Positions 49,722 through 50,363 of a stretch of DNA of 64,000 nt are shown here, piece after piece (positions within the stretch are counted from its first letter, which is position 1; each line of letters begins with the position of its first letter). The notes under the pieces are model-generated. The model did no database searches. It was not told where the DNA came from and saw only the letters and a program-made list of their open reading frames with translations. The stretch spans positions 248,001 to 312,000 of IMG/VR virus record IMGVR_UViG_3300017991_000048; one strand, 5' to 3'. A program made the translations under genes and the position numbers.

Positions 49722-50363
49722 TTAAAGGGTCCAATCGATGGGTTCATTGAGCACGGCATTTGCCCTGGAGAAAGGCTTGCTCCCGAAAAACCCCTTGGAT
49801 GCACTCATCGGGCTTGGGTGTGCCGATTCGATAACGGTGTGCTTTTCGGTATCAATGAGGGATGCCTTGTCTCTTGCATATCGGCCCCAAAGCACAAAGA
49901 CCATGGACTGATCCCGGTCACTGAGAAGCTTGATCACAGCGTCCGTAAAGGTTTCCCACCCACGGTCTTTGTGAGATCCCGGCTCATGTGCCCTGACAGT
50001 CAGAACCGAGTTGAGTAAGAAAACGCCCTGTTGTGCCCATTTGGTTAGATTCCCGTGCGTGGGGATGGGGATTCCAAGGTCATTCCGTTGGGCTGTGCTT
50101 TTCTGTTCCGCCTACAACCCTGGCACCTCCAAGCCTGCAAAATATCTACAAAGAGCTTGGGCTTGGTTTCTGCCGTGATATGGGTCTTGACCCAGAATCA
50201 GGACACGGACCTTATCGAGCGGAGTCTTGAACGCTGTAAAAACTTGACCCTGAGGCGGGTATACAGTGGTTTCTGCGCGTTCCTGCTTTACGAATTCAAG
50301 GAGAGATTTGAAATAAGGCTTGTCGAACTCAGGATCTAAAGCGGTTTTCCAGGACGGATGCAC
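49722..50363 (-). pseudogene. ung: Family-1 uracil-DNA glycosylase disrupted by an internal 69-bp inversion
   Basis: Minus strand: HPSW...[11 protein letters not shown], then NDLGIP...WAQQGVFLLN...FVLWG...HPSPMS. The missing GLCFSV...[11 protein letters not shown] segment is on the plus strand at 50089-50157. Re-inverting gives an intact ORF of about 213 aa from GTG 50363. Confidence 0.9.
50089..50157 (+). other. Inverted 69-bp segment of ung
   Basis: T GGG CTG TGC TTT TCT GTT ... TAC AAA GAG CT reads UDG residues on the opposite strand; both breakpoints are unambiguous. Confidence 0.92.

Follow-up and report, generated by a model that had tools for sequence, protein, structure and literature searches.

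In a giant phage recovered from metagenomic DNA of sediment, the uracil-DNA glycosylase (UDG) gene carries its middle part on the wrong strand, and the question raised by this locus is whether such an arrangement is an artefact of sequencing and assembly, one state of a reversible switch or the product of a single mutation and, in the last case, how so exact a lesion could arise and why it persisted. The source record comprises 398,071 bp, and its bases 248001–312000 form the 64,000-nt stretch of DNA that was analysed (the window, to which all positions refer unless another sequence is named). The phage record has 48.4% G+C and 42 tRNA genes, with no suppressors among them, and is about 93% coding with code 11 (standard); the broken ung at 49722–50363 is the only UDG-family locus in the whole genome.

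The ung Locus and Its Inverted Segment

The minus-strand frame that opens with a GTG (50363–50361), at the Val homologous to the one where the gene calls of the relatives begin, and closes with a TAA (49722–49724) encodes a family-1 uracil-DNA glycosylase in its entire length bar one stretch (Table 1). The NCBIfam ung model NF003589 is matched in order by three pieces of DNA: model positions 8–76 by 50160–50363 (minus strand), 78–99 by 50090–50155 (plus strand) and 102–224 by 49725–50087 (minus strand). The respective scores are 77, 28.1 and 170.3 bits, so that no single piece reaches the cut-off of 223 and the simple sum is 275, and an intact relative (L002) scores 314 bits against the same model. 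The inverted plus-strand piece of 22 residues matches ung models by itself (E=1.4e-6), and the 3′ piece, from which a start codon of its own is absent for 59 codons, is recognised by NF003589 (E=4.7e-50), by Pfam PF03167 (E=5.6e-9) and in comparisons with UNG chains of the PDB (E=1e-34 to 4.7e-44). The catalytic Asp loop GQDPYH of the 5′ piece and the catalytic-His motif HPSPMS of the 3′ piece are both present, and the motifs GLCFSV (GLxFSV, with the uracil-pocket Phe) and PPSL (PPS loop) are out of frame, since they are encoded by the inverted segment on the opposite strand.

Table 1. Features of the ung locus, in window positions
Feature	Position	Strand	Basis
ung 5′ part, residues 1–69, with the catalytic GQDPYH loop	50158–50363	minus	translation; NF003589, E=1.6e-21
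Inverted 69-nt segment, with the uracil-stacking Phe and the DNA-pinching PPS loop	50089–50157	plus	NF003589 78–99, opposite strand
Premature TAG from the reversed reading of the inverted segment	50112–50114	minus	translation; 110-aa product called on ENA contig
ung 3′ part, residues 93–213 and TAA (49722–49724), with the LLNSVLTV and HPSPMS motifs	49722–50088	minus	NF003589, PF03167, PDB
Left TTGGGCT copy (7-nt direct repeat), spanning the left junction 50088/50089	50088–50094	plus	sequence
Right TTGGGCT copy, spanning the right junction 50157/50158	50157–50163	plus	sequence
Downstream 366-aa gene, synteny anchor for the ung locus	48545–49645	minus	tblastn against the loci of relatives
Upstream 180-aa gene, probe for the same phage in other assemblies	50380–50922	minus	identical protein in 7 contigs

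When exactly these 69 nt were reverse-complemented by a script, an open gene of 213 codons without any stop was obtained, as expected from the original prediction that flipping the segment back restores the gene with neither indel nor stop. In an alignment with ten intact relatives the restored protein keeps 57 of the 57 invariant columns, 12 of which are located inside the flipped segment; this result and the order of the three pieces on NF003589 bear out the claim that an exact inversion of 69 bp disables ung. The two junctions split a His codon (CA/T) and a Leu codon (CT/A) that are conserved in relatives, and because a shift of either boundary by one base alters one of these codons, the breakpoints are exact to the base. 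The lesion had been described as frame-preserving, which is true and holds for any inversion; the relevant point is that no base was lost or gained at the junctions. The arrangement exceeds chance, given the E-value of the 22-residue piece and the 12 invariant residues that it keeps.

With 23 codons of its middle part read from the opposite strand, the gene lacks a continuous frame, and the locus, family-1 by its sequence, is for this reason classified as a pseudogene. The premature TAG is the only in-frame stop between the GTG and the TAA; because this stop lies inside the reversed stretch and a core segment of the protein is missing, the formation of an active glycosylase is predicted to be impossible. 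Read-through of the TAG by recoding was considered and ruled out, as code 11 fits the genome, no suppressor tRNA is encoded and a product read through the reversed segment would still be without the UDG core.

In the restored allele the breakpoint at 50157/50158 is the centre of the palindrome AGCCCATGGGCT (AGCCCA/TGGGCT), which covers Ala-His-Gly-Leu codons and is found, identical and at the same codons, in the intact relative L007; the 12-bp palindrome centred on one breakpoint is confirmed. The direct repeats left by the inversion in the observed allele are present as well, and they had been described as TGGGCT; the repeat is in fact 7 nt long, starting at 50088 and at 50157.

Compared with family-1 Ung (NF003589, TIGR00628, PF03167), the phage gene is similar in that all three pieces align in order and an HPSP-type motif is present, and it differs in its broken frame, with 23 middle codons on the other strand and a TAG, and in the intercalating residue of HPSPxS, which is Met and not Leu in this phage and in several of its closest relatives. 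Leu is retained in relatives that are further removed and in E. coli Ung (HPSPLS), where it is the DNA-intercalating residue that corresponds to the Met of HPSPMS.

The Inverted Allele in Independent Assemblies

The flipped junctions are present in six contigs from four assembly pipelines (JGI, Logan at k=31, and ENA MEGAHIT k141 in three separate assemblies), and the samples with the flipped allele are at least two at JGI (3300017991 and 3300017971), with probably a third data set; the links between ENA accessions and samples derive from accession numbers and contig ends, not from metadata. In the source run SRR6963352 a Logan k=31 contig of 1,796 nt covers 49681–50800 with 0 differences and no strand-change joint, at a word depth of 41.8 (37.9 in the adjoining contig); it is unbranched across both junctions, and a contig in the opposite orientation was not found among the Logan contigs of this run. 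The ENA MEGAHIT contig of ERZ27256796 (397,921 bp) is identical throughout the ung locus, and contig k141_3045159 of ERZ27256790 (767 nt) corresponds to window positions 49763–50529 with 100% identity, contains both junctions and encodes the same truncated product of 110 aa (P0001).

In JGI 3300017971 the contig Ga0180438_10448189 (971 nt) is in the inverted state across the junction 50157/50158, and the inverted form was also recovered in a contig of ENA ERZ27256798 (958 nt) that ends 3 bases beyond the same junction; the two contigs have in common a SNP at 50686 with respect to the window. The left junction was verified in L020, L021 and L023–L025, and the right junction is crossed, again inverted, also by L026 and L027, which come from another sample. 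Moreover, the 180-aa protein encoded upstream of ung is identical in 7 contigs belonging to JGI 3300017991 and 3300017971, ENA ERZ27256796 and ERZ27256798, and Logan SRR6963352.

None of the wider searches recovered an intact form of this allele: the next best protein to this allele among 5.8 billion is 77% identical, no near match was found among INPHARED phages, the 21- and 23-mers of the restored junctions are absent from IMG/VR, the pattern flank-N69-flank retrieved from JGI metagenome contigs the source contig alone, and a junction-only search of public runs retrieved the source run alone. DNA with the inverted allele was therefore present in two samples or more, and probably in three data sets. 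The evidence on orientation consists of contigs, which drop rare variants, and a minority of molecules in the intact orientation could escape detection.

A further variant was noticed in the JGI 3300017971 contig (L026, position 962), where the plus strand shows A>G at 50151, inside the flipped segment; in the original coding sense it would convert the conserved Lys of YKEL into Arg, and it may mark the onset of decay or be a sequence error, 10 nt from the contig end. The source sample also hosts two relatives of this phage at lower abundance, detected as Logan contigs of SRR6963352. One, at a depth of 3.4, shows about 83% identity in the 3′ part of ung (49681–50030); the other, with a depth of 11.9, occurs also in a second run (X4), spans 49482–50363 and has 725 unalignable letters in the place of the 734 between 49601 and 50336, including the ung locus. 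The Logan contigs break at 49681–49710, where the lower-abundance relatives share a 30-mer.

Age of the Lesion

In the 57 invariant codons of the restored gene none of the approximately 132 nonsynonymous sites has changed, and none of approximately 22 stop-creating sites has given rise to a further stop, from which it follows that the neutral divergence since inactivation is below about 0.02 substitutions per site (95%). On these counts the lesion is young when set against the closest intact relative, whose protein has diverged by 22%. The original prediction of a very recent event is supported by this bound and has to be qualified in one respect, as the flip is older than the spread of the phage across the sampled sediments and precedes its occurrence in several samples, one of which carries a SNP.

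ung and Nucleotide Metabolism Genes in Related Giant Phages

Sixteen related loci were taken from IMG/VR, and in most of them ung is continuous and adjoined by the 366-aa neighbour. The latter, for which Pfam and PHROG searches gave no matches, was found beside ung in 12 loci of relatives with identities of 30–69% (tblastn), and its conservation marks the ung loci of these giant phages as orthologous. Examination of ung in these siblings, suggested together with the original prediction, showed that the gene is intact in most relatives, where it is under clear constraint, and that different lesions are present in two cases.

In L014, from a 323-kb phage record, and identically in L012, ung was disabled independently (L014:2469–3318): the 5′ third of the gene (about 65 codons, including GQDPYH) is replaced by a reading frame of 191 aa with two helix-turn-helix motifs, whose PHROG matches are DNA-binding parts of HNH endonucleases, and a frameshift lies between ...WAKQ and NSVLTV.... 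In L017, from a phage record of 301,550 bp, a deletion of 105 nt with CAC at both edges, identified by comparison with the near relative L015, in which ung is intact, takes away the C-terminal 35 residues, among them the HPSP motif with the catalytic His (L017:3150–3300 versus L015:3150–3400). The independent lesions of ung are therefore three in about 12 lineages of related phages of 300–450 kb, which suggests that the phage-encoded Ung is expendable in this group.

A recombinase or dUTP-related genes had been named as genes to look for elsewhere in the genome; none was matched, since searches of the 398-kb phage genome for serine (PF00239) and tyrosine (PF00589) recombinases, dUTPases of both families, ThyA and ThyX gave no match. 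In the closest relative (G001) a 191-aa gene of the dCTP-deaminase/dUTPase family (L028:1704–2279) is located between two conserved genes, and in the 398-kb phage the orthologues of these two flanking genes are about 60 nt apart (13348–13410 of the phage genome, outside the window) and the dCTP-deaminase-like gene is absent. A co-variation between the state of ung and the dUTPase/dCTP-deaminase gene was considered on this basis; it is suggestive for the 398-kb phage versus G001 and is contradicted by another relative, G002.

Mechanism of the Flip

The best explanation of these data, which we regard as very likely, is a one-off micro-inversion that was fixed in a lineage for which ung is dispensable. 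In a single spontaneous event, two breaks 69 bp apart or two template switches of a polymerase would have reversed the segment in place, with no nucleotide lost or gained, and would thereby have inactivated ung; the process would have started at the 12-bp palindrome AGCCCA/TGGGCT or have been favoured by it, and the inverted allele would then have become the prevailing one in the phage lineage, persisting since ung is dispensable in the group. We infer the accidental, one-off nature of the event, the involvement of the palindrome and the role of dispensability from the features described above and below.

Perfect palindromes with arms of at least 6 nt have 58 centres in the 398,071 nt of the genome (1.5e-4 per position), and the sole one in ung is at the breakpoint; considering two breakpoints, the chance that one falls on a palindrome centre is about 3e-4, and a coincidence is unlikely. 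Microhomology is 0 nt at both junctions, where the flanking bases are non-complementary, and when the restored and the observed allele were folded as single strands, their energies were no different from those of shuffled sequences (z from −1.0 to +0.2) and no hairpin joined the breakpoints. The hairpin-driven template switching of the original prediction thus finds no support in its details, given the lack of microhomology and of significant single-strand structure, and what stands of it is the breakpoint at a palindrome centre, hardly due to chance.

A conservative break-and-rejoin of the 69-bp fragment would account for the exactness of the lesion more simply than template switching. Each route has a point against it: break-and-rejoin needs blunt end joining and, host functions aside, a search for the Ku family in the phage genome gave no match (control genomes matched), and in template-switch models the switch points are normally set by inverted-repeat arms or microhomology, neither of which is seen here. 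Several detailed routes were worked through by hand, namely template switches in both replication directions, staggered cuts followed by fill-in or chew-back, and a two-step process of inverted duplication and subsequent deletion; in all of them an added coincidence is needed to obtain the exact flip.

Alternative Explanations

The possibility that the inversion was never present in the phage, and derives from an assembly error or from a chimera formed during amplification or library preparation, is extremely improbable. Palindromes and short inversions classically yield chimeric molecules in amplified libraries, and the option had been included in the original prediction; however, the recurrence of the flipped allele in separate samples and pipelines excludes both a mistake of the assembler and a chimeric library molecule, as base-identical junctions were obtained from four pipelines (the assemblies of JGI, Logan and ENA MEGAHIT) and from the two JGI samples 3300017991 and 3300017971, at about 40x depth in one and with a distinguishing SNP in another. 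Phase variation, in which the ung segment would flip reversibly without classical inverted repeats, perhaps by means of the palindrome, and all the sampled populations would be OFF, is in turn very improbable. In both alleles the inverted repeats that link the two breakpoints reach at most 5 nt, the value obtained most often for 3000 random pairs of sites at a spacing of 69 nt, and neither serine nor tyrosine recombinases are matched in the phage genome (the control genomes were matched; a host enzyme is possible), so that the segment is not an inverton or a classic invertase switch, in line with the absence of flanking inverted repeats reported at the outset. A reversible switch would agree with the pristine state of the rest of the gene (57/57 invariant residues and no other stop), with the base-exact inversion and with the breakpoint at the palindrome centre, and continued selection on a reversible state is formally conceivable for a gene otherwise so well preserved; on the other hand, the flip destroys the palindrome and thereby ends the equivalence of the two junctions as sites, and the ung losses of the relatives are irreversible lesions. 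The six contigs, which come from two samples or more, show no orientation but the inverted one, and the Logan k=31 contig is unbranched, although a rare orientation could be invisible in contig-level data; a single orientation across samples, indicated beforehand as evidence against phase variation, is thus what was found as far as contigs show. We give equally little credence to a repeat-free switch in which a host or phage activity cuts the centres of short palindromes and rejoins the ends without loss, the intact orientation remaining below the level visible in contigs; such a switch, if real, would turn the uracil repair of a giant phage on and off and so produce a mutator state.

The prevalence of the inverted allele in several samples could also reflect a selected knockout, in which the inability to excise uracil brought an advantage and spread by a selective sweep, as opposed to neutral decay; for example, in a phage without dUTPase its own glycosylase could fragment the uracil-rich progeny DNA. 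We consider this reading unlikely, even if the phage has no dUTPase, ThyA or ThyX matches, the dCTP-deaminase-like gene of its closest relative is also missing and ung has been lost independently three times in about 12 lineages: the relative G002 combines an intact ung with no PF00692 match, and there is no clean co-variation; ung is clearly constrained in most relatives; and on these data neutral fixation or hitch-hiking cannot be told from selection. A selected knockout addresses the persistence of the lesion and not its origin, and it is compatible with the one-off micro-inversion as the best explanation.

Comparison with Known Systems

The phage lesion resembles the short template-switch inversions known in bacteria, yeast and primates, in which one local event swaps a stretch of tens of bases for its own reverse complement. 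Short-range template switching is described by a four-point model (Loytynoja and Goldman 2017, PMC5453318; cf. the quasipalindrome model of Ripley), and in classical cases imperfect inverted-repeat arms act as switch points. In contrast, the phage flip has neither arms nor microhomology, and in the four-point model a lossless flip demands an exact coincidence of the switch points (3 = 1+1 and 2 = 4−1).

Flanking inverted repeats, an invertase and coexisting orientations are the defining features of invertons (Chanin et al., bioRxiv 10.1101/2023.03.11.532203; PhaseFinder-type elements). The phage ung shares with intragenic invertons a reversed DNA segment inside a coding sequence; unlike in invertons, inverted repeats, a phage invertase and a second orientation were not found for it at contig level. 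Finally, as in ordinary pseudogenes of large phages, a dispensable gene is disabled and its neighbours are intact, but the cause is of an unusual type, an exact in-place micro-inversion with a breakpoint at a palindrome centre, and not a point mutation, an indel or a deletion.

The lesion adds one more case to a kind of mutation already known and is a well-documented curiosity that leaves the current understanding unchanged. It provides a clean natural case of exact micro-inversion without inverted repeats in a phage, which can be checked across assemblies and samples, and its combination of a palindrome-centre breakpoint with zero microhomology constitutes a useful test of template-switching versus break-and-rejoin models. 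As for annotation, a gene that appears to be missing from a metagenomic phage may hold a flipped piece, for which gene callers give nothing or a short hypothetical protein.

Genome-Wide Scan and Minor Observations

A genome-wide scan for micro-inversions, based on adjacent open stretches in the same frame, missing starts and a codon-usage score, was abandoned, as it produced hundreds of shadow-frame false positives; its sensitivity was too low for the recovery even of the known ung pieces, which scored 0.06 per codon versus a genome mean of 0.15. The top match of the scan, at window positions 59475–60374, is the shadow of a real minus-strand gene.

Among the tRNA genes of the phage, ARAGORN reports one of undetermined type at 92617–92693 of the phage genome; its anticodon has four bases ('tccg'), and two tRNA-Ile genes lie next to it. 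Of the remaining 39 tRNA genes, most are grouped at 355–388 kb. The 'direct terminal repeat' assigned to the phage record is of 123 bp only (1–123 and 397949–398071) and may be the overlap of a circular assembly instead of a true terminal repeat, the ENA assembly of the same phage being 150 bp shorter.
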